A stretch of 64,000 bases of DNA from Oculina patagonica (GCF_052425735.1 NC_135760.1:14942001-15006000), one strand, 5' to 3'. Numbered from the stretch's first letter, positions 1 through 64,000 are shown. The notes: a model not told the origin generated them from the sequence alone. A program made the numbers and translations.

Positions 1-584
1 GCCGCAAACAAAGGATTCAATATCAGATGCAGATGAGTTCGCAGAATACAACGGAACATCGCAGAGCTTTGCAGGTTACAGCTATAAGCAAAATGAAGAC
101 AAGTTCTACAAAAGTTCTTCCAAACATGAAGACGAAAAGAGTGCATTTCCAGGAAGGAATGACTCGAGATCATTTACAGCTCAATTCGGTGAAAAGGAAA
201 CCAATGACATTCCAGAAAATGATTCCATTAAGAAGGCCCAAAAAGAAGAATCGCATAACAAAAAGCAGAAATCTTCTGATGAGCCCGACTACAAGGACGA
301 AATTGAGAAAGAAGCTGTTGAACAAGAAAAAGAAGCCGATAAAAAAGCTGAGGAAGAAGGAGGTCACCATGACAACGACGACGATGATGATGATGACGAC
401 GAAGATGACGACAGTGATGATGAAGATGACGATGATGAGCAGAATGATGAGGATGATGAGGAGTTAAAGGACGAGGGACACTCCGTGCATGATAACACTG
501 AGCAAAAGGACGACATTAACAATCCCGCTGAACAGTCTTTTGCCGTTTCACCCACAGTGGTACCGGGAATGTGTCCGCCATGTC
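1..584 (+). CDS. Exon: Asp/Glu-rich acidic region ending in MCPPC (frame +2)
   Basis: Frame from position 2 is open: [13 protein letters not shown]...[36 protein letters not shown]...VVPGMCPPC, then donor GTAAGT at 585. The listed ORF 27..467 is an off-frame reading. Confidence 0.85.
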
Positions 585-2891
585 GTAAGTAACACTTTAT
601 CGTTTTTAACAGTTTCGCGGCTTGATTAATCACCTAGTCCTCAGAAAGGATAATATCTCCTGATGTAATTGCTGATGTTGCAAACGGTTATCACAAGCAT
701 CCAAATCTTACCATGACTAAGATTGGACACGATAACTGAGAATAACAAAATTACAAATACAGAAATGAGCATAAAATAACTAACATCGACTGTCCCGAAG
801 AATGCAGGAAAATGACAAAGCGAAATAAACGAGAAAACTTACAAGACGAATGTGACGAATCCAAAACTTAAAAGACGAATTGGAAGCTATAAACTGGAAA
901 CTCAAAACCTAACTAACAGAATCAATAAATTACACGTCAACAGAAGATATACAAAATGCAAATGAATATGACATGTTAAAAAAGGCTACTAAACAAAGGA
1001 AACTAACTACACGAAAAATAACACGAAACTATGAAACTCTGTACGAACTATGAAATTCACGTACGAAAATTCTGGCGCCCACAATAGCGAAGTGCGCGAG
1101 GTCTAAAAATAGAATGCAAATGATGTAACCTCCACGAGGCTCAGAAAACATCAGCGTGTTATGAGAAAAATAGAAAGAATCTAGGCGAAGTTTTCGTTTG
1201 ATGAAAGTATTTTTATGGAACACCAGCTGTTTTAGAAAGTGTTTAGGAAAATCGTCCGCCATTTCGGTTTGTGTGTCTGAGTCTTGTCTGAGTCGTGACG
1301 CCACTCGCGCGCTTCGGTATTGCCAACTGCGGATTAAAGCCCGAAAACTTGCGTCTACTTGCGTCTCCGCTTGGCCAAGACTTGCGTACACTTGCGTTGC
1401 ATTTTATGTTGTATTTTCTATAATGTAATTCAGGAAGTTCATTTATGTGGCAGTTGCATTTGTTCAAAAAGGTAGTTACAAGAGCATCATAGTAGTGAGA
1501 AGCGAACCATTTACTCAACCTCGTTCCCAGGGCTTTTCCCTTGGTAATTTGGAACGGGCGGGAAAAGCCCTGGGAACGAGGTTGTTATTTACTATCATAG
1601 GACATAAAACCAGTACACAGTTGATATTTTAATTGGTCTTGCTCATTATTTCAAAACAGTAAAATATATTTCCTTTCTTTTTCTTCAGCCAAACCAACTA
1701 AAGCACAAGGTAAGAGGTCTAACACCAAAATACTGTCCATTCAAATAATTCTTAGAAATTAAGCTGGTATCGCAAAAGTGCATATAAAAGGTTTTTACTC
1801 AGTGAGAAACTTCTCATCTTAGAACTTAAACAACATTAAAAAAGATTCATTTTTTGCAAAAACTACTAAAATTGCAGCCAGGATTCGTGATTCAAGTCTG
1901 CAAAATGTTTGACACTGGCTTAGAATAACGTTAAGACATTCATCTGACCCTGAAATTAGATAATTGCAGCAGAAAGGAAGAGAAAGAAAAAAAAATACTA
2001 GTATTGATATTAGGACAGAAAAGTGGTGGTTATTTATCTTAAAATATAAAAATGCCAAAAAAAAGAAATATCTATTCGTATTAGTAATTTGCGCTATATT
2101 TTTTCCCTCCCCAGCTTGTAATGCAAAAATCGACCTAGCTATTCTAGTCGACGGGTCTTCAAGTGTGGAAAGGTACGGTGTCGGTAACTTCCGAAGGATT
2201 ATCGACTTTGTCCGAGGCCTAACGATGGGTTTCGCCATATCAAGAACTAACACCCGAGTATCCTTGACTGTCTACGGAACAAGACCGAGAATGATCTTCA
2301 ATTTCCGCAGGTTAGTTGCACGCAAAGCTGTCGTTATCAAACTGAACACGGCTTGAAACTGGCAAACGACAAATGATTTCCAGCTCTGAGTTTTTATTTT
2401 TGATGTATAACCGTGCTACTGCCTACAGCCGCGTTGCTTTACCAGGGCCTCTGTTGATAACAATTTTAAACATAAAACTGATAGGGTAGCCCCCCCCCCC
2501 CCCCCCCCCATTAAAATAAAGGCCTTTACTACTTTTTGTTTTGAGGAAGCAAGTAAGTGAAATGCCGGCGAACCTCATAAATAAATACGAAGATCGACAA
2601 GACCGCAAAGATAAGGCCCTGGTAAAAAATAAAAATTTCACAATGTTGAGTACACACATATATTTTAACGCGGTGGGGCTGTTTTTTTCTCTATATTTTT
2701 TTCTCTTTTCTCTATAACACCGCTTTACACCCTTTTTTTATCTTTTACAACACATTACACAGTCCCGGTGAAACTTTCTGGGGGAAAAAAACGCCGACTC
2801 TATATATAAAACGGGGATATTTTCTATATCTTAACTAAACACACGAAAAAAAAAAACAAACTAAACAAAAAAAAAAAAAAATAACCACCCC

Positions 2892-2960
<69 letters not shown>

Positions 2961-5900
2961 AAAAAAAAAAAAAAAAGTCGCAAGAAATATTACAAAGTAC
3001 CTAAAACGGAAGTTAAAGTATAAAAAGACTTCATTGAAAAGAAGTCGATACCAATTCTAAACTAGCCAGAACAATACATTTTATCATTTCAGATACCAGA
3101 GTAACCCGCAGTTGTTCACGGGTCTCAATCGTCCCATTAACTATCCACGAACGGGCGCAAGAACAGGCCGAGCGCTCAGCTACGCGTATAGAAGGCTTTT
3201 CAGCAGAAGTCGACGTTCACGTTCCAGGAAAGTTGTTGTGGTCATCACTGACGGCCGCTCCATTGATGACGTACATAGCGTCTCCAAGCGACTGAGATCT
3301 CGTGGCGTCACCATCTACTCAGTAGGGGTGGGAAGGTACTTTAACGCAAAGGAACTTGATTCCATGGCAACCGATCCCGACAAGACTCACGTTTTCACAT
3401 CGGATTTTAAGCAGTTGCAGTACATCACGAACGATCTCAAGAAAGCCATTTGCATGAGTAAGTGTTCACAAAGTCACAAAACGTTTGTCTCTGATTACTT
3501 TTACCTAAAGTTGTAACTTGATCCGGAACTTGTGAATTGTGTGGTGAAAAGTTAAATAAATGCCAGGCACTTTAATGAGCGAGGCATCGTGAAAGGGTAG
3601 CTTTTGAGATCTATGTAGATAAAAAAATGAGAAGGCTTGTTTATAGAGAACTCGCATTTAAAAAATTAAGGTAAAAAAGAGGAGAACACTTGCCACTGAA
3701 ACTTAGAAACTCTTTTACATCTTTTCTTGTGTCAATTTTCCCGCTTAAAAAAGTAAGTCCATACTAAATTAGCGGATATGCTGTTTTTATCCAACGATTA
3801 AATGAGTTATCATCTTCAACAAGGTTCAAAAGCCTTGCAGACACGTCGACGCGCTTTCTTTTTCTCTCTCATTATATTTTAAAACAAAAGAATCGTCACA
3901 GTAACGAAGTCTCCTGTTCTACAGGGCCCAGTTGTTAGGGTAGATAACGCTATCTGCTGGATAAATCACTATCCAGTGGATAGCGTAGTATGTTTTGTTA
4001 ACATTTTATCCAATGATTAGCGATTTATCTGCAGGATAGCGTTATCCGCCCTTCGAACAACTGGCCCCAGGAGTGCAAAGTATAACAATTTACTCGGATT
4101 AAGATGATTAAAAAAATTGTAGTACTATCACTGTTGTTTATTTTGACTTTTTTTTGTTCAGGTGCTGGTGGTACTCTTTCGATTTCTAAATTGCAGCCAT
4201 GTGTGTGTACTGGGCCTACCAAACCTGTTGGTCCAACCAAGCCAGGCGGTCCAACAACACCAGGTTTGATTAACTAGAATTTTTTATATACTAATTAAAC
4301 ATTTAAAAAATACTCATTCTATTTCAAGTCTTTGCTACGTTAACAGCGTTTTGCAATTTTAAGCTACCTTAAATCTACAGACTATCCAAAGATTACTCAA
4401 TCAAGTAACTTTTTCAGTTGCTCGATATATATTTTAGAGTCGTAGTAACGTAAGTCACTGACATAATCGTCATGATTCATTGTAGCATCAGGGAAGACAA
4501 CAAAGAAACCAGGAGGTCCAGGAGGCCCTGGGGGCCCCGGCGGTCCGGGAGGTCCCGGTGGTCCAGGAGGTCCCAATGGCCCAGGTGGCCCCGGTGGTCC
4601 GGGTGGTCCCGGAGGACCCGGGGGACCCAAGCCTGGTAAAACAACAAAACCAACTAAAGCTCCTCCAGGTAAGAACTAAACATATTAAGTTTAAATTACT
4701 TTGCTGTCGGATGTCACGAAGTTAAAATTGTTTCTATATTTCAACAGGTAAACCCGGTGGGCCGGGAGGTCCAGGAGGACCGGGTGGGCCCGGAGGTCCG
4801 GGTGGACCCGGGGGACCCGGAGGACCAAGCGGACCAGGAGGTCCAGGTGGTCCGGGCGGCCCGGGGGGACCCGGAGGACCGAAAACAACTCCGAAACCAG
4901 GAACAACAACAAAGCCTCCAGGTAAACCTGGGGGACCTGGCGGACCCGGAGGTCCAGGAGGTCCCGGTGGCCCAGGAGGCCCAGGTGGTCCTGGGGGACC
5001 AGGCGGACCAACAACTAAGAGGCCAGGTATGGTTGTGTTATTTCTTTTGAACAGCGTTTTAACACAACCTTATAAACGTTACGTTATTCGATATAACGTG
5101 TTGTTAATAAGCTATCCAGAAACCAAAAAAAATCAGAAATCAGAACAGAAAGGGATGTTCAGTTTCTTATACGATGAATTAGAACATCGCCCATCTTAGT
5201 GTATCATGAAGGGTGTCAATTCGTCATTATAAACTTGAAAATCTAAACAAGCCCTAAAAAAATCGAACGTCCTGTCAGACTTGTTTAGAATTTTTTAACA
5301 CTGATTCCAAAAACGTAATGAATATTGCAAATGCTTACAAAATAACCCTTGTCACAAGACTGGACAATCTCAGATGATATATTGATATGCATCAAAAACA
5401 CTTTCAAATTCCTTTTGAATGAAGGAGGTCAGTACAAATTCGAAAGTTCTGCCATGCATTCCAGTGGTATTTTAGTCTCCGTAGAAAAGCACATAAATTT
5501 AGGTACAGTGAATGTGAAATAAATCGCCAAATTTCAGTGTTATTGCGCATATTAAAAAATAACATTCTAAAAACGTTTTCTGTAAGCACAGTGTCACAGT
5601 TAGAATCCCGGAATATACTTCGTAGTCTCAGTTGAATGCTCGAAACTTTTAGACTTTCGAATTGTTGTCTTTATTACTGGAATTCTTCTTGCAGGTAAAT
5701 CCACAAGACCAACAAGACCAACTAAAAAAGCGCCGGGAACACCAGGTGGCCCTGGAGGACCAGGCGGTCCCGGCGGACCCGGAGGTCCAGGTGGTCCGGG
5801 GGGTCCAGGAGGTCCAGGAGGGCCCGGTGGGCCCGGCGGAAAGACAACACCACGTCCTGGAAAAACAACAAAGCCAACGAAACCCACAAAGAAACCAGGA

Positions 5901-8900
5901 ACTCCCGGAGGTCCGAGTGGACCGGGTGGTCCTGGCGGACCAGGAGGGCCTGGTGGTCCGGGAGGACCTGGTGGCCCCGGTGGCCCTGGGGGACCTGGAG
6001 GAAAAACGACACCACGTCCTGGGAAAACGACAAAGCCAACCAAACCAACAAAGAAACCGGGCACACCGGGAGGTCCAGGTGGTCCCAAGGGGCCTGGCGG
6101 GCCCGGAGGCCCGGGAGGTCCCGGAGGACCTGGAGGACCCGGTGGACCGGGAGGTCCTGGTGGTCCCGGAGGCCCAGGGGGTCCAGGAGGACCCGGTGGT
6201 CCCGGTGGGCCTACAACGAAATCTCCAAGAGTGCCAACCAAGAAAACCACACCAACTCCGTATGCCCCGGGTAAGCCTAATGGCCCAGGGGGACCAGGAG
6301 GTCCAGGGGGACCCGGCGGACCCGGTGGTCCGGGTGGACCAGGAGGGCCCGGTGGACCAGGAGGACCAGGAGGTAACGGAATACTTCTTGTTTTTGCTTT
6401 ATGTATCGCGTCATTTATGTATCATTGATGTATCGTTTAGGTATCAGCTGGACCAACTGAGAACGAGAATCGCCGAGATTTGAAGGACCAGAGTCATAGG
6501 CGTACGAGGCGGGGGGGGCGAGGGGGGCTGCAGCCCCCCCAGTGCCAAAATTTTTCGGGCAAAATGGTTAGAATTCGGGCAACAAGCCTAGGAAAAAAAT
6601 AGAAAATAAGCCGACAAATCTCAACATTATGTTCAAAACGAGTTACATCAACAGAAAAAGTATTGGAAATATACCGAACTTTGTGGTTCAAAAGTTATCT
6701 GCTTTTGTTTCCTCTCGAACATTGATCATGTTCGATTTTTCTCGCAAATTCTGCGTGATCCCTCAGTTTGTTTCAGTTTCAATCATTTTGAAGTGAGTGA
6801 AAAATTGGCGAGGGCGACCAGAAGTTAGGATTTTCCATTTTCCGCACGGTGGATCCAGTGTAAGACCTTAAAACAAAGTCGTTACAAATGCGATGAAGCT
6901 TATGCTTTTGACTCAAATGTAAGTTCTAAGGACTAGCTCAAAACTTTCGACGAAATTTTTTAACTCATTTACCCCTGAATTTCTCACACGCTTTTGTATT
7001 TCTCTCAAGTGGAGGAAAAACAATGTAAAATTGGCTCCCCAAAAATACCTTATTTTTTTTAACAAGAGTGAATAAATAAAATATTTCCGAAGAAAAATGA
7101 TTCAGTGCATTGGCATCTTCGGGCAATGCCACGAAATTAATTAAGAACTATCGTTTCCCTTAAGCAAGTAGGAAAAGTTTGTACACAATTATTTCAATGA
7201 ACGTTTTGTTGTCCGTTTTATATGCCTTTAAACGCATGTCATTTTTTTTTTCGGGCAGTTAGGTCTCCGCCCCCCTAGGGCTGAAGGTGCCCGTACGCCT
7301 ATGACCAGAGTTGCACTAGAGTTGTCTTCAACTCTAAGCGAGCGTAGATAAAACAAGATAAATTAAAACTCGCGACTTTTAATGAAAATTTGAACATGTT
7401 CTAATCGGATAAGAGCACAGTACAGTTGACGAGGTCGTGGAGAGCGCTTGAAAGTTTCAAGGAGCGTTATCTCTTTGTTGTTTGGCCAAGGCGTAAGCGA
7501 CGTTTCTTTCCAATTTCGCTTCCTTCATTTAGCAGAACTGATCTACTGATCTAAGTGCTCTTTTGTTTTTTTGAGTCTAATGCTTGCGTGCGCTTTGCGC
7601 ATGCGCATTAGACTCTTTGTTATATGAAAAAAAGCTGTTAGCAATCCCAAGGGAATGGTTCGGGATCGATAATTGTTCGCTGTAATGTAGAAAACAATGA
7701 TCAGCTGCAAGAACGGACTCCGTACGGACACGCACGATTAGTTTCAATTAAAAACAGCCAATCAGCGACACGTGTTCCCACGCATAATTAAAAGTTCTTT
7801 CTCAAGTCACGATTATTGAACACTTGAACAGGACGAAATAATTTTCCAGTTAAGACATTTGTAAGCTTTTTGTGAAAATAAATCTTCGTTTTCAGTTCAG
7901 TTAAGCACTTGTGTTTTCGTCTTGCTTAAAAAGCAAGACGTCTTTGAGAAAAAATATTTCGACGGCGACTCGCGTTTATTTACACAATGCGACCAAATAT
8001 TTATTTTGTTTTAAAAAATAGAAAACTTTACCTCGGTTTTTGTATTTAAGTCATTCGAATTTTGACCAATTTTTTCTTTACAGTGTAAACAAAAACCTTC
8101 AAAAATAAAAGATGTACATGGATAAATGTAAATCAAGTTACGCGACTAAATCAAAATGCGTTTGTTTGGCCGCTTTGCAGTATTACACTGTCCCGGCCTT
8201 TGCCATACACTGAAATCGAATTTCATGCTTTTACGACTCTCAGAGATCTTAAGTTCTTCTTACAGCTAGAAAAATCATAAAATGGTTACATTGATATGGA
8301 AGTGATGATTCGCGAAATTTGTACATCATGATAAATAGTCTTCGCTCCTGTGTATGGTAGCTCGATAATAATTGCCTAGTTTCCAGCGTTCAAAAGGTCA
8401 TCATTATATTGACGTGAGCATTTACACCCGTTTTTAGGAAAATCTGTCACTAAGTGCTTACAGTACAATGGAGTAACAGTCACTATTTCAAGTGCTTTTA
8501 TTGCAAAATCTGTTTCAAGAGTCATCATCAAAATGGTGAAAAATCTGAAAGAAAACGATGTGAAGTTCTTCAACCCTTGTTGTAATGAACATGCTTTTTG
8601 TAAATCGTCACGCAATCTTGTCCAAATGTTTAATCGTTTCTGCTTTTACGGACAATACGGAAGAAGTAACATCAACTCCTGTTCATACTTTAAATTTTGT
8701 GAAGCATATAACATTTATGACTGTTTCGTTTTCATCCATAATCATCCACGATGCCCCTAGCTTGCTATAAGCATTTTAAATTAAACTCCCGAACACAAAC
8801 CTCTAACCAATTTTAACCGGCTTACGAAAACCGCGCAATCTGTATCACTATGCCATACGGCATTAGACTCATGTCACCCTTGGTGACCTATTTTTTTTAA

Positions 8901-11900
8901 GTGTATCGCCATTACTAAACGTTTGAATGACAGTTTGCTGTTGAAGACAACATTTATTTTAACACTGCTCACACATTGAAAAGCGCGTTCTAACCTCTGG
9001 TTACTTCTGATGAGCTTTGTTATAGCAACGCTCACAACAATAATTAAATAGAATTGAGGCTATGCGTAGGATAATATAATAATTTATGTAACACTTTTTT
9101 ATCATCCTTAACAGTTTTCGTGTAAATCTTTGCTATGTACTAGTAGTAACAAACAGAGTTGAACCAACCTGTCCATACTCTTTCGCCATTCTAGGCGATA
9201 TTAGAAATTCACATTATAAAATTTTCAATAACGAGGAAATTTGTTTCTATAATCTTTCAGGACCGGGTGGACCAGGTGGTCCCGGAGGTCCAGGTGGTCC
9301 GTATGGTCCCACGACAAAGAAGCCAGGTAAACCAGGAGGGCCTGGGGGTCCTGGAGGTCCAGGGGGACCAGGCGGACCTACAACAAAACCCCCCGGTAAA
9401 CCAGGAGGGCCAGGAAAACCGGGTGGTCCCGGTGGCCCCGGAGGACCCGGCGGTCCAGGAGGCCCAGGAGGTCCCGGTGGCCCCGGGGGTCCAAATGGTC
9501 CTAAAACCACAACACCACGACCGGGTGTACCAACGAAGAAGCCAACGACTAGAAAGCCGGGATCACCAGGAGGGCCCGGTGGTCCTGGAGGCCCCGGAGG
9601 ACCAGGCGGTCCGGGTGGACCGGGTATGTCACATATCTGTTGATTGTATATTGCTTTACATATTGTCATGATATCACGTGTACAATGCGCTACACTCAGT
9701 AAATTGCATTCCGAAACCTTCCACCAATATATTTTTCATATATTTAGGAGGAGGTATAATTGATTCGATGCTTTTCGGCTTTTTTCTATGATTTCAAAAC
9801 GCAAAAACCCTCTAAATAGTTGTGAAATCGTGGTTGAAATCATGACGTACTTTTTTTATGGGTAACTTCACACGGCAGGGGTATTTTGCAGAACGCATAA
9901 CGCAGAATGATGGTCAGCGGTTTGCGTGCGGTAAGCTTTCACTCCAGTTTGCTTGCGGTTAGCTTTTATTTGTTGGTTAGGGCATTATACTATCGCTGTT
10001 CCGTCACCACATTCTGCGCTCTGGGTTCTGTGTTCTGCATTCTGTATTTTACATTCTGCCTTCGGCAAAATATTATTCAATATTTCCGCCGTGAAAACAG
10101 TTACTATTGCTCGTAACCTTCCTTGACCTGAATTAGACCAATACCCTGTTTAAATCCAAGGAACACAGGGTAATGGTCCATAAAGAAAGTTACTACTTAA
10201 CCAGAACTAGGAGTTGCAGAACTAATCAGCCCGATTACCATGGTTTAAACTAGAAATCAGCATAAGAGAGGTGAAAGATAGGTTACTTCAATGGATATAA
10301 ATGTATTGTTGTGAATAAAACCCTGCTATTGTCATGTCAAACAGGTGGACCGAGCGGTCCGGGAGGCCCCAGTGGACCCGGCGGTCCTACGACTGCGAGA
10401 CCCGGTGTCCCAACTAAACCAACCAAGCCAACAAAGAAACCGGGTAAGCCGGGTGGTCCAGGTGGTCCTGGTGGACCCGGTGGTCCAGGAGGACCCGGAG
10501 GCCCTGGTGGTCCGGGTGGTCCAGGAGGCCCCGGTGGACCCGGTGGATCTACAACTGCCAAACCCGGTGTACCAACTAAATCAACCAAGCCAACAAAGAA
10601 ACCCGGTACTCCAGGTGGACCCGCAGGCCCTGGAGGTCCCGGGGGACCCGGCGGCCCCGGCGGGCCTGGAGGCCCCGGTGGACCCGGCGGACCCACAACT
10701 GCTAAACCCGGTTTACCAACAAAACCAACCAAGCCTACAAAGAAACCGGGTACTCCTGGTGGTCCAGGAGGTCCAAAAGGACCCGGTGGACCGGCAGGCC
10801 CCGGAGGTCCAGGAGGACCCGGTGGCCCCGGCGGGCCTGGAGGCCCCGGTGGACCAGGAGGGCCAGGTATGGTTTATGTTTACTTTAAAATTTTATAACG
10901 GTTTTTGAAAGGTCAACATCAATCCGCGAGCTTTGAGTCTTACATGAAACTTGATCGTATCAGAAGCAAATAGAATTAAGTGTGTTCATAATAAAAATTT
11001 TGGTTTGTATCTGGTCTTAAAATCGGTTTAAAAAAGTTGGTAAAAAAGTATAAACTGAATTTTTGGTAACTCTCTGTTACCTTCATCAGAGTTAAAATTG
11101 GTTCAGTTTTTGCATTATAAGTTTTTATACACCGCCGGTCTCTAGGGATGTTCCCAATGTTAAATAAACTTGTGGGAAATGCACATGCTCATTCACACAG
11201 TTAATGTCCTGGATAGAATGTAGCGCTTCTAGGAATAGGCGTTGTTGCCTATTGTTGACATTTCGTTGAAGGTAAAAATGAAAACTTTCTTAAAAGCATT
11301 TGAGATTGCAGTTAATATATACAATGCTAAAATACTTGCAAGAAAATGAGTAATCAGATAAGGAGTTCGCTATCATTAACTTCTATGGAACACCACAATC
11401 TGTTTAAATATCACAAAATTAAGTCTAAAACGAAATTACTGTCTTTTTAATCCAATAGCGCAAAGTCAAAACTTGTTTAGAGATCGTTTAAATTACCGAC
11501 AAAAACTCTGTTACCTTATGAAAATGTGGCTGAAAGTTTAAATTCGCACAATGCAAAAGGTTTACATAAGAACTACACAGTCTAAAGGCGCTTTCAATTT
11601 GTCAGGACTGGCCGGCCGATCCGGTGATTTTGAATGTGAAATGGGCCTTTCCCAGGGGATTTTCCCACAAATCCACTACAACTGTATAATATTTATGCAT
11701 TGAACGATTCGACAGGACCTATCTGACTAACAACGGAATTCTGTTCTCGAATTTACCGGTCTGGCAACCTGTAAGCGACAAGTTTATCCTTATAAGCATT
11801 CGGTGATCAACTTAAAAATTTGAGTTTGGTGCTGCAGTATCGACAAGAATACGTGTCAGTTACTACTTGGGGCTTGGGATTAACAGGGATTGTGTTTGAT

Positions 11901-14900
11901 TCCTTGTTATAAGGTGGACCTGGAGGACCTCCAGCAGGACAACCAACAACACCAGTGACAAAGCCACCGGGTACCCCAGGGGGCCCCGGAGGTCCAGGGG
12001 GACCTGGCGGACCAGGAGGTCCGGGAGGACCCGGGGGACCCGGAGGACCAACAGGGCCAACGAAGCCAACGAAACCCCCTGGTAAACCCGGGGGTCCAGG
12101 TGGACCAGGAGGGCCCGGTGGTCCGGGAGGTCCGGCGGGACCAACAACAAAGCCACCAGGAAAACCCGGCGGACCAGGGGGACCTGGAGGACCAGGAGGC
12201 CCGGGAGGTCCTAGTGGCCCAGGAGGACCCACAACAAAACGACCAGGAACTCCAGGTAATGATGGACAAAACAAGGTCTCAATATAACAGTATTAGAAGG
12301 AACGTCGGAGGTATAGAGTTTGGTATAGCATATGTCTTGTATGTTTAGCATATAGCACTGGTGAGCAACAAGAAGCGTGGGCTTATAAGAAACGAAAGCT
12401 GCAAGTTGTGACATAATTATATCAAAGGAAAAATCAGGAAAACAAACCTGGTATCGATCTAGACAAAATAATAGGCCATTTCCGAGTTGCTATTTTCCTC
12501 TGTGTCACAACGAGTCTTTTTGTCAGCTGTCTTGTGAGGCCATTAATGTGGAAATGAGTATCACCAACACGTTTTGCACGAGGCTCTTTAAAAATAGAAA
12601 CAAAAGGCAACTAGGAAATTGCCTATTGGAAACCTCAAATGTCAGCTCCAAGTCAAGGAAATTTGCTGTGCGTTAGACTTCAGCTGAGGTACTTGTATTG
12701 CTTTCTTGGGCGAGACACTTAACTCTCAGAGTGGTTCTTCCTACCCAGGGATATAAATGGGGATTTACGAACCGTTAGGGCATGCAACGTGACAAAATGG
12801 TAGTGGTTACCTGCGATAGACTCGCATATGCCTACCCTTAGCCGATCGACATTACTTTGTCTCTGGAAAGGCTTTACTTATTTTGTACATAGCATTGAAC
12901 ATAATTTTTATTATTCAGGTGGCCCAGGAGGTCCCGGTGGCCCGGGAGGACCCGGAGGACCGGGAGGCCCAGGAGGTCCAGGGGGACCCGGCGGTCCTAC
13001 CACTAAACGACCGGGATCACCAGGAGGTCCCGGCGGTCCCGGAGGGCCTACTACAAAACCAAAACCAGGAAAACCCGGAGGGCCTGGAGGCCCGGGTGGA
13101 CCAGGAGGTCCAGGGGGACCCGGAGGTCCCGGCGGACCAGGAGGGCCTGGAGGACCAACTACGAAACCTTCAAAACCAGGACAGCCCAAGACGACACCCA
13201 CGACTAAGAAACCAGGAAAACCAGGAGGTCCGGGAGCTCCTGGGGGACCGGGAGGTCCAGGAGGACCCGGGGGTCCAGGAGGCCCGGGAGGCCCGGGTGG
13301 GCCTGGAGGACCAGGCGGCCCCAAGACAACAAAACCAGTTCCTGGAGTGACAACGAAACCAACCAAGAAACCAGGGACACCCGGCGGACCGGGAGGTCCA
13401 GGGGGACCAGGAGGCCCAGGTGGGCCGGGAGGACCCGGCGGCCCCGGCGGACCTGGTGGACCCAAGACAAAACCTCCTGGTACTATAACCAAGCCGACCA
13501 AGTATGCACCCGGAAATCCAGGCGGTCCCGGGGGACCGGGCGGACCAGGAGGCCCTGGGGGACCCGGAGGACCCGGTGGACCTGGAGGGCCACCCAAGAC
13601 TACTCCTAAAACACCTAAGACACCAGCACCAGGTTAGTGCAGATAATATGGCAAAATAGGTGAAAAATATTTGATATAAAAAAGTCAAATAATATTCAGC
13701 AGCGTTATCCTTTCTCCTTCGTCATTACTATTGTATTCATAACAGTATTGTATTGCTATTGTATTGCTATTATAATCACATCTCTTTTTAAGATAGATGT
13801 CCACTTAAACATGTTTTTTTTTAAGATGTTGCCCTATTTCAGCCAAATCAATCTGTGACAGCAATCTTTAAATGTATGCCGACGAAAATATGAAAAATAG
13901 CGCCTGAAGATGCAAATAATGGTTGCATGCGCTTCTTGTTCAAAAATCCAAAGCATGATATGGTTGATTGACGGGCAACCATGAGTTGAAATATAAAACA
14001 TAAACTGCTTAACTAGCTTTTTCTTAACTGAATCGAATGTTTCCTTTTTGAAAAGCCGAAAGCACAGTTAAAATCCTACACCATTTTATCCGTTCAACCA
14101 AGAATGGTTAATCGCACTTTAGCTTTGTGGTCAGTCATTTACAAAAAACTTAAAGTTTGTTGTCACGAGCCGATTTTCATTACTCAGCTCATGATCAGAG
14201 CCTTGGTTTGAGCCTTGCTCGAAGTTGGTTGAAAAATTAAAATCCCAAAGCGACATTACGTGTGATTAAAAACGTAAAATATTAAACTAACTAATAAACA
14301 GGTGCCCCATGAGGGATTTTGCTATCACTGATGTGTGATTTATTATCTTACAGGCAAACCTGGTGGACCTGGCGGGCCAGGTGGCCCCGGAGGACCAGGG
14401 GGACCAACCACAAAGCGACCAGGAACCCCAGGGGGACCAGGAGGACCTGGTGGTCCCGGTGGTCCGGGTGGACCCGGAGGTCCAGGCGGCCCCGGTGGTC
14501 CAGGCGGTCCAACAAAGAAACCTGGAAAGCCTGGGAAAAAAACTACAACTAAACCCCCGGGAGTACCCGGTGGCCCAGCAGGTCCGGGTGGCCCCGGAGG
14601 TCCAGGAGGCCCGGGAGGTCCAGGAGGTCCTGGTGGACCCGGGGGGCCAGGGGGACCCAGTGGTCCTACAACTGCTCCCCCAGGGAAACCCGGCGGACCT
14701 GGAGGTCCCGGAGGACCAGGAGGTCCCGGTGGTCCTGGTGGTCCGGGAGGTCCAAAAACATCTCCACCCGGGAAACCGGGTGGCCCAGGAGGACCGGGTG
14801 GGCCCGGAGGTCCTGGAGGCCCTGGAGGACCCGGTGGACCCGGAGGTCCCGGATGTGTTATGAAGCCGACGGTACCAGGAGCAAAAACTACACCGAAAAT

Positions 14901-17900
14901 TGGTCCAACAAAACCTGGAGCTGCCACGCCAACAACTGGAAAACCATGTATCACGATTCCACCAGGTGACCTGATGATAAAGCTTATAGCAAAGTGAAAG
15001 CTTGCTATCTATCATTTGATTGTATCGTGTTTATATTATAAGCATGTAATAAAACTTGCCACTAACTGTAGCAGTCTATTGTTTCTGCTGTTCTTAAGAT
15101 ATTCTCCTTGCCTAACAAGTATTATTGTTGCTTGTCAGTCTTAACTGCCAGGGTCCCATTACCTGTTACTAGGAAATTTCAGCAAACCATTGCCTTTTCA
15201 ACCTTGTCTTTTAAATTTGGAAAGTAGCATAGTTGTTTACGCACATCAGTAATATATTCTCATAATCATTATTTTAAGAACTGCTGTCGTTTTATGATTA
15301 AGGTTTTACCGTTGTAAGGAAACCAACAACTGTTCCCACGCGGCCAACTGGACCATCAGGACCCACTAAAAGGCCTGCTGCTACAACCTCACCCAGTAAA
15401 GGTATTGATCTGTTCAATCTTCTGACGAATTTTTTTTGTTTGAGGTGACTTACTTATACCGAGCAGACTTAGCAGAGCCGTGCAATCAAATTCAGTATGT
15501 GTGAGCGTGCACCATACGCCGATAGTGTGAGCAAATCGCTTTGCCAGAAATTTTTCCCCTTGCGTGAGTTTTGAGAGCTACATAAATCCATTGGTTCATG
15601 CTTTTAGCTGTGCACTATCGAGTTATGGTGTAAGCAGGAAATTTGGAAAATACTCAGGAAGTTAAAATATTGCGTTCCAAAGTTTGGCGGTGAAACTTAA
15701 CATATATGGGTTGAAATTAAAGTTAAAGATGCTGAACTCTGATGAAGGTGTAAAGTCACCGAAAATTTAGGTTGTAAAAAAACAGATCGGCTTAAAAAAC
15801 CGTTTCATTTCATAAATGTCCTGCACCGATCGCCATACTGGTTCCTGAGTTTTAAAAAATTAATATAGTATAAATATGTATTTAAATGTACTGTAGACAT
15901 CTCGAAGGGTACTAAACAATTTTTCTCTTATTCTGAACACAGTGTGCAAAGCAAAGATGGATATTGCATTCGTGATCGACACAGGCAGTGGTGTCAAGAA
16001 AATCTTCAGCGGTATAAAGAAATTCTTCCTAGAACTGGTCGACTCCTTTACCATTTCAAGCCAGAACGTCCGGGTTGGTTTGATTGAGGACTCATACCGT
16101 CCTCAAGTCAAGTTTAGCTTCGGTCAGTACAACAGTCCTAGACAGATTAAACGCGTTGTTCAACTGTTACAGCCAAAAGGCGGAGCTAGACGGACAGGAA
16201 AGGCATTAAAACTCGCATCAAAACGCCTCTTTCCCGCCAGCAAGGGAAAGAAAACGTTAATTGTACTGACCGCGGGAAAATCTTTCGACCCAGTGCTTGG
16301 TCCGGTACAACAGCTAGCTGCTATGGGAGTCGATATCTTCAGTGTTGGCGTGGGGCCTGGTGCTAGTCGCAGTGAGGTTCTTACTGTGGCTAAAGATCCT
16401 CAGCACGCGTACGAGACAAACTTCAAAGGCCTGGGGACTATAGTGAAACGAGTTAAGGACAAAGCATGCGCAGGTTTGTTCATCTTCAATGGTATTGTGA
16501 TAATGTTAAAGTGGAAAATCAGACAACGCAACTTAGCTTCACTATATTAAAATTCATTACCCTTAATCTCAATAAACGTACATTAACTGCACTGTCCAAC
16601 AGAGACAAACACAAATTTAAGCATACTAAAATCAGTCAATCAGAATGTGTAATGGCCGGTCCCCGGCATGACTTCTACGTTTTGGAATGGGTGAAGTTTT
16701 CTTAACTGTTTAGACACTGTTATGGCTAAAAATTTAACTATTTAAAACATTTTTTAAATTTGATTTCATCATTATCTTTTTGCTGTTTTGAGCTGTATCA
16801 CCGAAGTTCTGAAATAAATCTCTCGTCGAAAAAGCTTGTCCTGGGTACTTCTCTATTATAAACCACTTCGCATTTTGTGGTATTTTTATGATTAAATATC
16901 ACGCTCAGAAAACTTCATATTATGTTAAGTTCTGTCTTTTATACTAAATTGACCCTTTTTATTTTTATCACAGAGGCAGGAGGCAGTCCACAGAGACCGA
17001 AAAAGCCAACTAAACGGCCAAGTAAGTAATTAACAAATGTAATTAATATGAAATTAAAAAAAAGTTTTAATAAATTAATTTCATTAATACCCTAAAATGT
17101 AGCGTACTGTTAGTATGTTACAACTAGCATCTCGGGACTACTAGCACGAAACGACTTTACGTAATTTTCTGTCAGTTCAGCAAGATCAAAAGAGAATCAT
17201 TGGGACGCCAAAAGACAATTTGATGTCAAATTTTCGCCGACATTTAAAATCCACTGACTGCGAAACACATCGTCTTTGCCAATTAGTTATTTTAACCCTA
17301 CTGGCAGCATGCAATTTCATCCCTTATTTACATCGTGTTGCTAATTGTAAACATCTGTTCTCAAACCAGAACCACCGAAAGCTGTAGCCATCTTCCCTCT
17401 AAACAAACGAGCTCGGGGTAAAGACATCGGTCCCTTGAAAAACAGCCCAGGAATTCTGTACAATGTTCGACCCGCCCCAGGACCAAACGGCCAACCTGGT
17501 GGAGCTGTCAAGTTCCCTAAATACAAGACAGGCTACGTTGAGTTCCCCAACAGAGGAAAACTGGATACTAAAAATTCCATAACCGTGATCGCCTGGGTAA
17601 AGCCGGACGGACCGGGAAAAATCGTCGAGTACAAGCCAAGAGGTGTGACGTTTGGCATTCGTTCGCCGGATACTCTGTATGTTCGTTTTACTCGCCGAAA
17701 CGGACGGCCAACCAAAACTGTCAAAACAAGGCGACGAGGAGTAACTCTTCGAAAGTGGAATTACATCGCAGTTACGTACGATCAGCGGACCGGGACTGGA
17801 ACCATTTGGCGAAATTCTCGCCCCGTTGCCTTCCAAAAACTTGGTTGGATTAGACTGGCCACAAAGAATGCGCTGAGACTGGGCGGGGCTACTCGCGGCC

Positions 17901-47679: not shown

Positions 47680-50003
47680 AGCACAGCCAAAACATAAAGT
47701 ATGAAGGTAAGAAACTTATCACATCAGGGATATTGAAAAAAGTATAGTTACAAGAAAGAACTCAAGCTAAGACAGGCCGAGGGAGGCTGGTGAAAACTGC
47801 AGTTGCAGAGTTTCATGCATCATCCCATTTCCCGCTTTTAACAGCAGCTTGCGATATAATAAACGCGTTAAAAAACAAGTGACCTCCTTTTATCCAGATA
47901 TAAAACTGAGGCTGCTTCAGCACGAAGCTGTTATTGTAGTTCCATGCAACAGTTTTGCAACCAAGAACAATTTACTTGTTTTCTAGATTTACGTGTCCAT
48001 AATAACCGTTCTCATCTTGTTTTATTTGCATTTTCAGGTTCTATCATTACTCACAAGGGAAATAATGCAAGACAAATTTTATCTTAGAGATAAAAAATAA
48101 ATGAAGAGATATTCTTATAGTAACTAGTCTGCCGTGGCAGTGATGCACAACATGTCCAACCGACAATAAAGGGTTCTTTTACGTGCGAGATTTTTGAGAC
48201 GGCTCTGCATACTGGCCAAAACAAGGTCAAATGACATCTGTGGTAGAGACCTTTGTTATACGTAACAAAACAGTCAGTCACATTAGTTCAGATATTTTGC
48301 AAAGCATTGAACCACCTAAAGCTTTGCTTCAATAGCCCAATTTCGATATTTTAAAATTCAGCCCAAAGCAATAGGCATCACTACGAGGCTCTTGGGAATC
48401 AAGCCCACACACTGTATAGTTTCTAGAGGTCTATTGTTTTACGCTTAATTTTACTGAATATATCGAAACTGGGCTATTGGCTGCTAGTTTCTGTCTCCTT
48501 TGCGCTGTTCTTTTGACACTGTGTCAAATCGGTCTTGTTCGCTTGTTTGGTATTTTCCTTTGATAAGAATCAAATACATACAGCATAGACGATTTTTCGT
48601 ACAGTGCAAAAAGTCACAAGGGGTTGAATTTTCAGTGAGGCGGTTTCTATTGCGCCCACCACGAAAAAATACTATTTGCTTGGTTATGCGTCATCAGAGT
48701 TTTATTGCATCATACTAGAGGCCAAGAAACAGTGAACATTCTTGTTGTACGGGATATAAGATTAGAATTTCTCAAAGTGTGAGACAATATTATTATTTTA
48801 TCTAAGCGGAAAAAGCAGGCTATAGCTATGTTGATATTTTAGGAGTAGTATGCTAATATAAGTAGTATTACGTAGTCATTTAGTTCAGTATTAAAGCATT
48901 AACAGCTAAAATGCAATGCAGACGTGTATTCAATAAAATGGTTTATACTTCCCCGATGAAATCGTTTGTTTGAAAACACACGAGAGAGGAAAAGCAACTG
49001 AACTGGAGCATTCCTTTTCTAGAATTTCACCTGACTTGAATAAAACATGAAAAGGCTCATTCAGTCGTGCCTTTTAGCAAATCTTCTTTGAATCAGCCGA
49101 CGAGTTTACGATTCTCAGCGCGAAAACTGGGAACTAAACCGAAATTTTTCATGCCAACATCCCGCAATGACTTCATGTTGCTTAGCAGCTTTGTTAACAA
49201 ATACCGCGGGTTCAGTCAGTTCTCGGCCTGAACTAGTACTTGCTTCCCCGACTGCGTTCCAAACGGCGGGTTCAAAGAGAAAAACGGAGGGTGGACTGAG
49301 GAGACCTGAGGGCAGGAAGGGCGGGGAAGAGATGTTGCCCACTCTTTCTCTCCCCAGTCGTTTCTCGTCTCTGCGCGATATCTTACCCACGTCAGTTTTT
49401 GCCCGCGAAGTTTGGATCTAAAAATAGCTATCTCGCAAATCTGACGGCGCGCGTCGCAAATACAAAATAAACTCTTCATGTTATAGTTTTCTGACGAAAA
49501 CATTGTAGTGTTTCATAAACACGGCTCGTAAGCGCTGTTATGTCACCTCCAGTTTTCCTTTTCAACATGTACCTGTCCAAAAACACGAAAAGACAATGAC
49601 TCGAAGACAAATTCAATTTTCGCTTATTAATTATTACTAGCGCCTGTTCATACCTCCAAGCGAACGTAATTTTTTGACGGAAAATTTTATCGACGAAAGA
49701 TTGTTTTCTAAACAAGAGTTAATGTTTATGGATTGACAAATAATTTTGTTTAAATACCACCTCACTGGTGTACAGAAGCTATGTTCCCTTCACTAAATCT
49801 GCTCCGAAAGCAAGGTTTGTTCTGTTTCCAGTTTTGTCGTGCTGTTTGTTGCTGAGGGAAGCGTAGCATTTTGTTGACGTATTATTTTGATTTTCTTTGG
49901 TGTGATATTCCTTGCTCAGTTGCACAAAAAAATAATTAATTCAAATTCCTTGCCTTAAAAATAATAACTAGTTTAAAAGAAAGGAAGCGAAGCAGCCGAG
50001 TCA

Positions 50004-59384: not shown

Positions 59385-62300
59385 ATGAAGAAACATTTGG
59401 TGATTGTTGTGTGGCTTTTGTCTGCTGTGTTAATCGATAAGGCGGTCTCAACTGGTACTCTTGATCAGTTATCAGGTAAGAGGTGATAAACACCTTGTTA
59501 TGTCGTCGTAAGGCTTAGGTTACACTACGAAATAAACAACACCGATTTAGGAACATACCGGTGAACTGCCACAGACCGAGCACAAAAAAACGTATTTCAC
59601 GCAAATGGTACTTCACGCTCCAGCTAGAACAGTAGCTTTCGAGTAATAAGCTTTCCGCTCAGCGAGGAATGAATAGAGAGAAGGGGCAAGGCGAAGATCA
59701 AACATTTGTCGTGTCATGTTGGATGTACCAGCTAAACAAACCGACAACTTTTGTCGCATAAACGTTGGCTGAAAATGTTTAATCAAGCTCACATAATTAT
59801 CCAACACGAACATTTGTTTGTTCGTTTAACCAAGACTTCATGGTTTTTAGCTTCCTTGTTAGTGTCGTACACAGTAGGTATGACAGATATCGTTGAAATT
59901 GACGGATTTCTGCACAAGGTGCCTGTAAAAAATTTGTGGCTTAAAAATGAATTGTGTACATGCCAGCGGTATCTGCGGACTGAACGTCAAATGGGTAGAT
60001 GTAATTGCATTTAGTGATTACGAATAAGCCGCGCAATTTCGGTCGAGTCTCTAGACGATGGTGTACAGGAAACATGTTACATTATGGCAATAGAGTACCG
60101 TAAAAAGCCCTCTTTAACCCCTTTTCTTATACGCCACCTTCTGGGCGGTTCACTTTTCTTAACAAGCCCCCCCCCCCCGGGGGGTAACCAAAAAAGATTT
60201 ATTCGGGGAGGCTCCACCCCTAGCTCTAACCCCTTACCGTTTTAAATCCAATTTTGACAGAAATTGTACCCCTTTCGTATACCTTTTACTGAAAAAGATA
60301 CCCCTTTCATATACCTAAAAGACATGGCATAGACTTAGAACAGGACGTTTTCTTGTCATTTACATGTAGCGCTTAATAAATTAAAATGATACAGCCATAA
60401 ATTGCGCCTGTTCGAAATATTTTAATTAAAGGCCCTTTTAAATAACTAAATAGCAGATTTCCATATCCTTTCGTATACCTAAACTTGTGAAATCCCTACC
60501 CTTATATATACCTGAAGCCTGAAAAAAGGTACCCCTTTCGGGCGGAGTCTCCCCGTATAGGCCATTATAGGGAGTACCCCCCCCCCCCCCGGACAAGCCT
60601 TCCCCCTTTCCAAGATGGTCGATCATGACAATTTGAGAACAAGACAAAAGGTAACTTTACATTGATAGTTCATGTACCTGGTAAATGCAACCAACAATTA
60701 AAGGATTTTGATGGTATGTACGTTGACTTAAAAACAGACTTTGAAAGTGACATTGAAAAACGCACGTTGCAGAGCTCGAGGACCAAAAGCAGCTACAATG
60801 AGCGGTCGATTAATTAAACGTAATCCCTTTTTTCCGCAGCACGAACCGCAACTCCAGGTGCAGCAGGGAGACCAAGAAGCGAAATTGATCTAGAAACAGG
60901 TTTGGTGGTTTGCCTTAAATATATAACACTTTTGAGTAGCCAAGTTAAATGTAAACGATATTCCATTGAATACCAGTAATGATCTGGAAGGATTACGCTG
61001 AAATTTCACTCTCTAACTTTACTTGTAACAACCACATCAGGTATTAAACAACAACAAATCAGTATTAATTGCCTCTCTCAGATAAATCCGTCATCATTTG
61101 CGCTGGTCAGAACAAATCACTGGAATGCTTCTCTCCCGGGTCAAGCATCGCTATAGAGGAAGCTTTCTGGGGCCGCTTATCAGCTGAAATCTGCCCCTCG
61201 GAGGACGGAGATCCGGTCACTAACTGTCTCAGCGATCCTACAACCACCCCTATCGTACGGAATCTGTGCGATGATAAAGAATACTGTGAGATCCCCGCCC
61301 GTCATAACGTTCTACAACCCCCAGGGGTCAAGCACTGCCCTGGTGTTAACAAATACCTGGCTGTGAAATATAGGTGTACACCTGAGAAACATAAATTTGT
61401 GCTGTGCAATGGCGAAACAACAGAGCTTCAATGCGGCCAGGGATGGAAGATACATATCATGTCAGCCTACTGGGGTCGGGATTCACCATCTACCTGCCCT
61501 ACGCCCTTAGGGAAGTTTTTCACCTGCGCTAACTCAGCGGATAGCGTGTTGGCGTTGAGGGAGAGATGTTCTGGTAGAGAGAGTTGTATCGTCACCGCAG
61601 ATGATAACCATTTGACTAAAGAAAGAAGCCATTGCCCAGGAATTGATAAGTACGCTCTGATCAGTTACAGATGTCAGCCACCAGGAGAGGTCGCAGGTGA
61701 GTGAACTGAAATAGAAACTGAAACCAAGCAAGACAGTGATGGATAACAGGGTTCACATTTTACACTTTCGAGCTGTAATTAAGACGGCTCTCTTCCTACA
61801 TCCCCATTTCTGACCAAAAGCCTCTCCGCAAGTGCTCCGTTTCAGGGCTATTCAGTCCTGTAGGATGATATGATAGAACCTTTTGGACAATCGGAACGAA
61901 CTTTTATTTTCTTATGAAGATATTGCGCACGATGAAAAGCATTTATGTCACATTTCACATCCAAAAATCATCACCTCATGGCTCATGAAGTTACCCCCTT
62001 ACCACCCAAAAGCGAGTGGAGTTTTGTCCTGTTGCTTTTTTAATTCCTTTCTTTTTGACAGATCCGTCCAGAGACAGTGGAAAAAAGCTCCTTGAATTAC
62101 CACAGGAAGATACATTAAACACACTCCACTCCTCACTGTACCCTACAGCAAATTCCAAGACCCCTTCACTTCAACAGGCAATGGGTGAACTGAACCTAAG
62201 CATGTTACTTCCTGTTCCTCAGTACAATCGTGCAGATAAGCTGAAGCCAATTATCGACTTCCTTGGAGAAGAAAGTGGAGGGAAGAATCAGACAACGCTT

Positions 62301-64000
62301 ACTGGGGAAACTCTCCCTGTTCCTAAAGATTCCCACCCGATCATGTCAAACAAAAAAGACAGCTCTTCTTCACCAGCTCAGAATGGAATAGCACCCTCCG
62401 CCTTCGCAAAACAAAATGGCATTTCGTCATCGACAAAGTTGCATTTAACCGATAATGTTTCGAGCTCCACGTCAGCTGTAAATAGTGTCCTCGGATCCTC
62501 AAAAAGTCAAGCTGCAGTAATTTCACAAAGCATACAAGCAAATGAAGCTTCCACATTGGGCTCGGTTAGACCACTCCAAACAGTTAACCATAATTCTGCT
62601 TCAGCCACGACTGATGCAGTAAAAAGACCTTTAGAGTTGTCAACAAATCCAACACAAAAGCCGCAAGTTTCTACTGCAATACAGCCGCTTGAGGATATTA
62701 CAGAAGGGTTGGTAAAGAGCTTTCTTAGCAGCAAGTTTGGACAGGCGCTTGGCAAAAGTCTTCTTGACTCTGGTACAATTGAGGACTCCTCTTATAAAAA
62801 TATACTTGCACAACATTTCGGTTCTAGCGCCAAACCAACCTCATCGCCAGCAAAACAAATTCCCGCAAACCAAGATTTGATTGCCAACCTCGTTTCAGGC
62901 CTGATACACAAACCCACAAAGCAAGATTCAACAGGCAACTCGGCTTTGAACAAGAACAATGAGAAGGAGATCTCAAAGCCTGTTAAACAAGACTCCACTA
63001 ACAACTTGTCTTCTCCAACTGTTTCAATAGGAAATAAAGTTTTCTCATTGACTGACTTGGCAAATTCTTTGCTTAATGAAAAGCCAGCTTCGAGTAAATC
63101 AAAAAATGTAAATAAAGATATCCATCCAGTCAAGCAGCGAAACAAAGAAAAAATTAGAAGACTTGATGAAAAGATTGCCACATTGGAAACTTTAAGTGAT
63201 GCTTTAGACGCTTTAACAAATCAGCTATCGCCAGACGAAACGTCAGAAGGCGAACAGAAACACAAGGAAATCTCGCTCAGCTCCGACAAACCAATTATCC
63301 AAGAACAACGACCTAACAAGCATCACACACATCATCATAAGAGCGACCCATTCTCTGAAGATCTAGACATGTTGAGTGCACTTTTAGCACGGGACACAAC
63401 TCTACCGCACACAGAAAAGAAAAAGCCTGTCGTTTCCAAAAATGATAAAGACTCGACCACTATCGTGGGGATAAAAGGAAAAAAAGGGTTGAGCTCAGCA
63501 GACCTAGAAATGTTGCAAAACAAAATCAATCAAGCCATAGAAATGGCCGAAGCCGTGGGACGACAGCACAATACCGCTTCGCAAGCCAAGTCAGCCACTT
63601 CGTCGTCTTCTTCTTCTTCTTCTTCTTCTTCTGCTTCTTCTTTCTTGCCTCTTCTTATGGCAGGAAAAGTAAGTGAAGACGTCGGAGCACAAACACGGGA
63701 AGAAGTGGCAAAAATTCACACCAATAGTGTCGCTTCGAAAGGAACCTTGCCGTCTAAGGATCATGAAATGCAAAGCTTGCAAGCTATTTTAACAAGGCTT
63801 ATTGACAGCGCTATGCGGAAGGGAACATTGAACCAGTTAGTGCAAACATGGGGTCGTAGTGGAAGTCCATTTGCAGACATAGCGAAAAACATTTCACTAT
63901 ATTTACAAGGCAATAGCAAGCTTAAGACGCCAATTTCGAGACTGGGAAGCAAACAAACCGCGGTCGTCACCCAACCTAAAACGAACACTGGTGCAACAGT
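59385..64000 (+). CDS. Secreted double SUEL/RBL-like protein 3 with long Ser/Thr/Lys-rich tail, 3'-partial (exons 59385-59475, 60840-60899, 61082-61696, 62062->64000)
   Basis: Signal-like MKKHLVIVVWLLSAVLIDKAVS; two SUEL domains (AFWGR...HCPGVNKYL; AYWGR...HCPGIDKYA). The exon from 62062 reads without a stop to the window end (DPSRDSGKKLLELPQ...PKTNTGAT). Confidence 0.83.
60177..60592. repeat. Interspersed repeat with CCGGGGGG...CCCCCCGG termini
   Basis: Inverted G/C-rich ends and repeated internal TACCCCTTTC(G/A)TATACCT motifs. Confidence 0.55.

Follow-up and report, generated by a model that had tools for sequence, protein, structure and literature searches.

Cnidarians and other animals provide several described systems with which the locus analysed here can be compared. 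It lies in a 64,000-nucleotide stretch of the Oculina patagonica genome (GCF_052425735.1, NC_135760.1:14942001-15006000; the window in the following) and consists of a giant gene encoding a strongly cationic secreted protein and three genes for secreted lectins with SUEL domains, called L1, L2 and L3. The sea star protein Sfp1, a large multi-domain adhesive that is secreted, has its galactose-binding lectin domains within the large protein itself, whereas the lectin domains are found in neighbouring genes at the Oculina locus. Nematogalectin, a secreted and cnidarian-specific protein of the nematocyst tubule in Hydra and Nematostella, unites Gly-X-Y repeats and a SUEL-type lectin domain in one small polypeptide, while blocks of Gly-Gly-Pro (GGP) and SUEL domains are encoded here in separate, adjacent genes. 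Hence, the analogy to nematogalectin drawn in the first-pass annotation of the window holds as a resemblance only; no protein of the locus joins the two parts, since the lectins contain no Gly-X-Y run and no SUEL domain was detected in the giant exons scanned with Pfam. Nematogalectin serves as cnidocyte marker, and its Nematostella copies (NV2.4511, 5188, 5196, 5200; PMC12549020) have identifiers that differ from the NV2.163xx models tentatively matched to our locus. The rhamnose-binding lectins of fish eggs and sea urchins, for example CSL2, CSL3 and the three-domain lectin of PDB 5H4S, share with L1 to L3 the tandem SUEL domains, the eight Cys in each domain and the KYL motif. Due to its multiple VWA domains, the giant protein is similar to secreted matrix proteins of the collagen VI or matrilin type and to the 'vWFA and ConA lectin domain' proteins of the Nematostella matrisome list, from which it differs by the missing Pfam collagen match, the extreme positive charge, cationic modules with two Cys and an Arg-rich exon. 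Finally, operons and read-through transcripts with two open reading frames (ORFs) are described from nematodes, tunicates and Hydra. A comparable single spliced RNA with two complete ORFs of neighbouring paralogues was found for L1 and L2 in Acropora, where translation of the second ORF is putative.

We tentatively regard the four genes as an old, conserved neighbourhood of genes for secreted proteins that share a job, and assign a probability of about 0.4 to this interpretation. The conserved linkage is real and provides the strongest argument for coupling. Lectin orthologues were used as anchors, and their genomic surroundings were then compared; giant orthologues were recognised by the C-terminal Laminin_G_3 (LamG) domain. 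In Acropora digitifera, the cationic modules, the Arg-rich exon and the C-terminal LamG of the giant gene are followed by L1, L2, L3 and a gene for carboxypeptidase D, all on one strand and in the same order as in Oculina, where the carboxypeptidase D-like gene downstream of L3 consists mostly of one exon of 933 aa (L003:6311-10000). The succession of C-terminal LamG, L1, L2 and L3 was also found in Porites evermanni and Desmophyllum pertusum. An anthozoan contig from an ENA assembly, which is about as distant as Nematostella, contains LamG, then L1 after 9 kb and L2 after another 9 kb. In Nematostella, L1 (XP_048582886) and L2 (LOC5522393) follow each other and converge on the giant gene, which is inverted; carboxypeptidase D is not present at this locus. 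The Nematostella giant (OW051988.1, 9.16-9.19 Mb; L006:22121-26401, minus strand) corresponds to a gene model of 19,043 aa. At its 3' end, it has a VWA domain, an Arg-rich exon and exons with homology to the two final coding segments of the giant gene in Oculina, including the C-terminal LamG domain. The microsyntenic block is therefore present in four scleractinian genera, one further anthozoan and Nematostella, which places the origin of the neighbourhood at or before the ancestor shared by stony corals and sea anemones. Cnidarian genomes have kept whole chromosomes, while the local gene order became scrambled; hence, a block that survived the split between corals and anemones is a candidate for regulatory or functional coupling. 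Nematostella is the informative case in this regard, because sea anemone genomes are reported to retain microsynteny poorly (PMC10719294).

Some other candidates were rejected during these comparisons. The LamG exon proved too promiscuous as a marker of orthology: HMMER returned 2,835 proteins without any giant orthologue, and the long matches were, according to Pfam, unrelated mosaics of polycystin-like or tectonin-like type. Likewise, the search with the Nematostella Arg-rich exon gave nothing, as it was swamped by low-complexity candidates. The Hydra orthologue of L2 is arranged head-to-head with a gene for a VWA protein of 3,100 aa, which was not accepted as giant orthologue, as tblastn with the whole giant model revealed no similarity in the 10 kb available. 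In Oculina itself, a short paralogue located 4.7 Mb away (C3:19702001-19722000) encodes one VWA domain and a C-terminal LamG that is 54% identical to that of the giant; it has neither GGP blocks nor cationic modules, an assembly gap lies 2 kb upstream, and no lectin gene was found within 10 kb downstream.

The gene models bear out the arrangement proposed in the first-pass annotation, i.e. four genes all on the plus strand with the giant cationic gene directly before the lectins and the first lectin ATG about 2.3 kb behind the giant stop. The latter distance amounts to 2,325 nt (L1 ATG at 50004), and Pfam places the VWA and LamG domains in the giant gene and the SUEL domains in the lectin genes at the positions given there. 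The modelled giant product is a secreted protein of ~6,114 aa with an isoelectric point (pI) of 11.5. It shows an unusual architecture, in which an acidic head (N-terminal 579 aa, net charge -89, pI 4.2) precedes a strongly cationic remainder, whose net charge comes close to +1,000 over about 5,500 residues. The signal-like N-termini noted for the lectins correspond to a separate hydrophobic signal exon in each of them. The description as three tandem-SUEL lectins is correct regarding the two SUEL domains per protein, but only L1 is a plain lectin, while L2 and L3 carry long non-lectin tails. It had also been stated that linkage not conserved in related genomes would speak against a common function; instead, the genes are collinear in corals and adjacent in Nematostella.

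How close the giant gene and L1 are to each other was seen in contigs from four RNA runs (X1, X2, X4, X10; three organisms), which were picked because they hold this stretch and were aligned to positions 46700-52200. These runs had been flagged as RNA by guess only, but the contigs are spliced and thus represent RNA. Transcripts of the giant gene as well as of L1 were present in all four. The joints 47306 to 47639 and 47706 to 48038, both with GT..AG borders, verify the last exons of the giant gene, whose 3' untranslated region (3'UTR) was covered to 48786 in three runs and to 49056 in one. Since the 5'UTR exon of L1 begins at or before 49474, the untranscribed space between both genes comprises only ~0.4-0.7 kb.

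In Acropora, L1 and L2 are linked at the level of the transcript. Three independently assembled Acropora RNA contigs (L008, L012, L013), one from a JGI metatranscriptome and two from Logan run assemblies, were mapped to the A. digitifera genome. Each contains the complete ORFs of L1 and L2, ~1 kb apart, with every coding intron removed. Moreover, they lack a GT..AG intron of ~680 nt that separates the 3'UTR of L1 from the signal exon of L2 and extends from ~1,090 nt past the L1 stop to ~11 nt before the L2 ATG. Because this intron between the two genes has been spliced out, the contigs reflect read-through RNA and not an assembly join of overlapping ends. Hence, L1 and L2 demonstrably form one transcription unit in Acropora. 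A fourth Acropora contig retains the ~680-nt intron, and another one ends within the UTR. Older gene models also fuse both lectins, in A. digitifera to a protein of 801 aa and in Nematostella to one of 787 aa. The Oculina model KAL9981134.1 was discarded as evidence for read-through, as no clean splice sites could be matched to its 5' extension of L2. Operons are so far not known from this class of animals, nor is spliced-leader trans-splicing known from anthozoans. The Acropora two-ORF RNA raises the question of operon-like transcription in anthozoans.

The assignment of L1 to L3 to the SUEL family is clear. PF02140 scored 92, 121 and 109 bits, where the curated cut-off is 31.4. Each lectin has two domains, and the eight conserved Cys of each domain form invariant columns in the alignment. 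L2 and L3 possess 16 Cys each, none of them in the tails, and L1 has 17 with one in the signal region. The best match among solved structures reached an E-value of 3e-32. In the structures of CSL3 and latrophilin, residues of the motifs YGR, DPC and KYL make the contacts to the sugar. The canonical motifs YGR and DPC...KYL are not found in full in the Oculina lectins. Compared to the solved lectins, the alignment of L2 shows FWGR for NYGR and AENC or SQHC for GDPC; the same substitutions were read by eye in L1 and L3, where Lys or Ser occupies the position of the DPC Asp in some domains, while KYL is retained except for KYA in the second domain of L3. Hence, sugar binding is not assured, because WGR replaces YGR and DPC is lost, features by which these proteins, together with the long tails of L2 and L3, differ from CSL2, CSL3 and 5H4S. 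The lectin exon of L2 is 81-95% identical across Anthozoa. The 97% match of L2 to a Porites evermanni protein is explained by its slow evolution and not by close kinship. Such a very slow evolution would be as compatible with a partner of protein nature as with a glycan ligand. On chromosome C3, where the window lies, the own-genome scan matched only the six SUEL domains of the lectin genes, while at least 118 SUEL matches were found in the Oculina genome, in many tandem clusters including the large ones at C2:43.95-44.26 Mb, C4:54.5-54.7 Mb and C14:3.75-3.83 Mb.

A lead to the cell type comes from Nematostella. The protein NV2.16335, which is described as 'trichohyalin' and has been named 'vWFA and ConA lectin domain protein-1' (NvvWFAConA-1), and its neighbours of the same kind NV2.16336, NV2.16338 and NV2.16343 are listed among the cnidocyte-expressed extracellular matrix (ECM) genes (PMC12549020). 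The first two entries sit among nematocyte-specification markers, and mesoglea mass-spectrometry values are given for three of the four proteins (NV2.16335, 16336, 16338; PMC12549020). The domain content, the trichohyalin-like label, which matches the Arg-rich exon, and a gene index that suits the ninth chromosome agree with the 19,043-aa gene. L1 and L2 were not found in the cnidocyte ECM and mesoglea tables of the same study (PMC12549020). Other entries were not accepted as giant orthologues, namely NV2.21576-21578 (vWFA-WSC and neighbours) and NV2.8259 (vWFA, Gly/Gln-rich), whose gene indices do not fit the chromosome. Similarly, a Nematostella preprint reports a 'rhamnose-binding lectin' that marks cnidocytes, but no connection of this lectin to L1 or L2 could be established; it may be nematogalectin-3, which bears the same automatic description. 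The candidate gene identifiers were not present in the stored supplements of the Nematostella cell atlas, and a literature search with the accessions and LOC identifiers of the locus found nothing. The searched literature mentions the giant protein family only in a matrisome list, where it stands as an unstudied entry; no functional study was found.

A common function of the giant protein and the lectins is plausible on these grounds. The genes could stay linked via shared local cis-regulation in one secretory cell type, their products might be deposited in one and the same matrix, either extracellular or of an organelle, and the SUEL proteins could dock onto the giant protein as scaffold or onto a polyanionic partner common to them. 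Shared regulation, a common cell type and any physical contact of giant and lectins are what we infer. The best guess for the cell type would be the developing cnidocyte, resting on the unproven NV2.16335 lead. If the genes work together, the locus supplies well-defined components, open to testing, of a secreted material specific to cnidarians, which may belong to the stinging capsule. A more specific version, which we regard as unlikely, assumes an ancient cnidarian cluster for a polycationic scaffold and SUEL partners of the cnidocyst matrix, in which the charge binds capsule polyanions (poly-gamma-glutamate or chondroitin) and L1-L2 are expressed as operon-like mRNA. Several observations speak against a functional neighbourhood in general. 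The Nematostella locus lacks L3 and the orientation of its giant gene differs, while in Hydra and a medusozoan-like contig only L2 was found, with no recognisable giant within 10 kb. No contig bridging the giant gene and L1 was seen in the four RNA runs. The ratio of giant to L1 contig depth was ~25:1 in X1, 0.5:1 in X2, 4:1 in X4 and 1:1 in X10; these are crude values from runs that differ in organism and, by the tool's own warning, a poor measure of expression, but with a spread of ~50-fold they do not point to a fixed ratio. Each of the four proteins is basic, with pI values of 8.4-9.3 for the lectins, which makes simple charge attraction among them unlikely. Moreover, the cell-type lead depends on NV2.16335 being a fragment of the Nematostella giant, an identity that is quite probable as judged from its domains, the trichohyalin-like label and the gene index.

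The main rival explanation, which is quite conceivable, is a neutral or structural linkage. The genes would then be neighbours by descent, kept together by rare rearrangement or by tightly packed transcription units, and their products would not act together. The L1 promoter would lie against the giant 3'UTR and L2 would depend on read-through from L1, making breaks deleterious. The collinearity of the unrelated carboxypeptidase D gene in Acropora and Oculina points in this direction, indicating that scleractinian gene order is kept here regardless of function, and so do the intergenic gap of only ~0.4 kb, the L1-L2 read-through splicing in Acropora and the widely varying depth ratio. Furthermore, SUEL genes are so numerous in the Oculina genome that every cluster has some neighbour, and adjacency alone is thus weak evidence. 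However, the Nematostella giant still adjoins L1-L2 despite an inversion that removed the head-to-tail packing, the order is kept across the 9-kb spacers of the anthozoan contig, and sea anemone microsynteny is generally poor (PMC10719294), all of which argue against a purely structural cause. Alternatively, the lectins could act alone in mucus, pattern recognition or the egg coat, with the giant protein being an unrelated component of mesoglea or another matrix. L3 indeed resembles a secreted mucin with a lectin head, the great expansion of the SUEL family is expected of recognition molecules, and three putative fragments of the Nematostella giant were quantified in mesoglea preparations (PMC12549020). 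We nevertheless consider independent action somewhat unlikely, because the evolution of L2 is much slower than expected of a typical immune lectin and the linkage with the giant gene survives in Nematostella.

The first-pass annotation had proposed a direct mechanism, in which the SUEL lectins recognise O-glycans that decorate the Thr-rich spacers and thereby cross-link the giant protein into an adhesive or matrix material. The spacers are rich in Thr, Pro and Lys, with 10% Thr across the GGP region, two SUEL domains per lectin could bridge two ligands, and the conserved linkage of giant and lectins would be in line with such an interaction. In addition, rhamnose-binding lectins were reported to be upregulated in the pedal disc of Exaiptasia, and similar findings for adhesive secretions of Hydra are cited in the same paper (PMC6626399). 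However, glycosylation of the spacers is only putative, and the mucin-like tail of L3 could itself be the ligand. The deviating SUEL motifs, with WGR for YGR and Glu, Gln, Lys or Ser at the DPC Asp, also make this speculative mechanism quite improbable, given the roles ascribed to these residues. Moreover, SUEL domains of the latrophilin type bind proteins, and the high conservation of the L2 lectin exon across Anthozoa is uncommon among immune or adhesive lectins that bind glycans.

The giant gene comprises ~50 kb and ~59 exons on the plus strand, with most of its length inside the window. Its exons were chained by a purpose-written program that combines codon log-odds with splice scores, followed by two manual corrections, one of them RNA-guided. 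A single open frame threads 59 exons from the ATG of the signal peptide to the RNA-confirmed stop. The model is our own and is approximate in the small linker exons, where at least the exon 38942-39041 is a doubtful choice. The ATG is situated 2,573 nt upstream of the window (window coordinate -2573), and the first exon, also upstream, encodes the signal peptide MFFSLLLRGTLLLLVVNHSIAQ. The window opens within the acidic exon, whose frame is unbroken from the upstream flanking DNA (L004:9702). Further upstream of the giant gene, a run of ORFs (L004:1046-2843) resembles a membrane transporter, as judged by eye. In total, the model predicts a signal peptide, the acidic head, four VWA domains, the GGP blocks, ten LamG domains, seven cationic modules and an Arg-rich helical exon, interleaved as given in Table 1. 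The GGP region consists of 43% Gly, 31% Pro and 10% Thr, with 241 GGP triplets. It has the periodicity of Gly-X-Y, but the runs are short, 28 of them with at least 5 triplets and the longest with 16, and Pfam returned no family, Collagen (PF01391) included, at E <= 0.01 for the two exons of this region that were scanned. The GGP region thus shows neither the profile match, on these two exons, nor the long uninterrupted Gly-X-Y runs of collagen triple helices. The array of nine LamG domains carries a net charge of +332, and the region of the cationic modules, with 32% Lys and Arg, one of +257. These two-Cys modules gave no match in Pfam; a faint precomputed WSC match exists for the Acropora orthologue of the region. 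Homologues of the Arg-rich exon were found in Acropora, with 40% identity, and in Nematostella, where it is enlarged to 1,426 aa, i.e. four times the size in Oculina.

Table 1. Features of the giant gene and the lectin genes L1 to L3 in the Oculina patagonica window (positions counted from its first nucleotide).
Feature	Position	Strand	Evidence
Giant, exon 2 (part), acidic poly-Asp segment	1..584	+	unbroken frame from upstream; GTAAGT donor after 584
Giant, first VWA domain, two exons	2115..3457	+	Pfam VWA E 1e-9 and 3e-22; exon chain
Giant, (Gly-Gly-Pro)n blocks with Thr/Lys/Pro spacers, ~1,300 aa, ~11 exons	4162..15401	+	composition
Giant, second VWA domain	15943..16473	+	Pfam VWA E 4e-27
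Giant, nine Laminin_G_3 (ConA-like) domains, mostly one exon each, short Pro/Thr/Lys linker exons between	16974..33779	+	Pfam on 2 of 9 exons (E 5e-19, 6e-18); others by ORF list and exon chain
Giant, third and fourth VWA domains	34040..36760	+	Pfam VWA E 3.5e-15 and 2.4e-30
Giant, seven cationic modules, ~85 aa, two Cys each, Arg-Pro linkers	37129..43828	+	exon chain
Giant, single Arg-rich exon, 344 aa	44571..45602	+	46% Lys+Arg, zero acidic residues, zero Pro
Giant, C-terminal Laminin_G_3, exons 46304-46495 and 46827-47306	46304..47306	+	Pfam E 4e-12; RNA contigs fix borders
Giant, last coding exon, stop 47677-47679	47639..47706	+	GT..AG joints both sides, RNA contigs, three runs
Giant, 3'UTR exon after 331-nt UTR intron	48038..49056 (end approximate, 48.8-49.06 kb)	+	joint 47706 to 48038; run X1 contigs to 49056
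L1, 277 aa	49474..52200	+	RNA joints for every exon; translation; Pfam SUEL E 2e-26
L1 exons	49474-49810 (5'UTR); 49968-50052 (ATG 50004, signal peptide); 50543-50608; 51291-52009 (two SUEL and basic tail, stop)		
L2, 507 aa	54350..57400	+	Pfam SUEL E 4e-35
L2 exons	54350-54425 (signal peptide); 55284-55340; 55423-56031 (two SUEL); 56619-57400 (264-aa Pro/Gly/Lys-rich tail)		
L3, 1,938 aa	59385..64000 (window end)	+	Pfam SUEL E 1e-31
L3 exons	59385-59475 (signal peptide); 60840-60899; 61082-61696 (two SUEL); 62062 onward (tail)		

An assembly gap (Ns) at 37975-38103 sits in the intron 37840-38156 of the giant gene. Its flanks are intron-like, as the preceding exon ends at 37839 before GT and the next one starts at 38157 after AG. 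The reading frame is kept across the gap by a split codon (G and GT) for Gly, and the resulting junction '...KPR-G-RPRPRP...' matches other transitions from module to linker; a further module exon could nevertheless be concealed in the gap. At the 3' end (47677-48037), the giant stop lies only 27 nt before the exon junction made by the 331-nt 3'UTR intron. Nonsense-mediated decay follows a 50-55 nt rule and should thus not be triggered at this short distance. In each of the four RNA runs, a short element at 48330-48390 of the giant 3'UTR draws numerous contigs whose flanks are unrelated, and it breaks assemblies; it is probably a dispersed repeat.

The lectin genes share a common layout, in which the signal exon is followed by a short one of ~60 nt and by a single exon that encodes both SUEL domains. 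L1, whose 3'UTR runs on past 52200, ends with a short basic tail, and most of its orthologues show a Lys-Arg pair just ahead of the first SUEL domain. The translated L2 model is identical, residue for residue, to XP_078362682.1 (LOC144646858) of Oculina patagonica. The L2 tail had no Pfam match and the ESM Atlas search no usable one; its blocks NIGRLGMGGLKALEKINNLIKASAE and ERMIIEGI are common to corals and Nematostella, and the C-terminal motif G-x-G-N-x-P is retained out to Hydra. The tail of L3 is encoded in one exon, which ends 3,111 nt beyond the window, and comprises 1,683 aa rich in Ser, Lys, Thr and Asn, free of Cys and with 30 N-glycosylation sequons. Orthologues of L3 with the same tail occur in Acropora, Porites and Desmophyllum. 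Intron 1 of L3 includes at 60120-60600 two similar segments with repeated 'tacccctttc' motifs, each ending with a run of C followed by G (ccccccccccgggggg), which look like a pair of small mobile elements.

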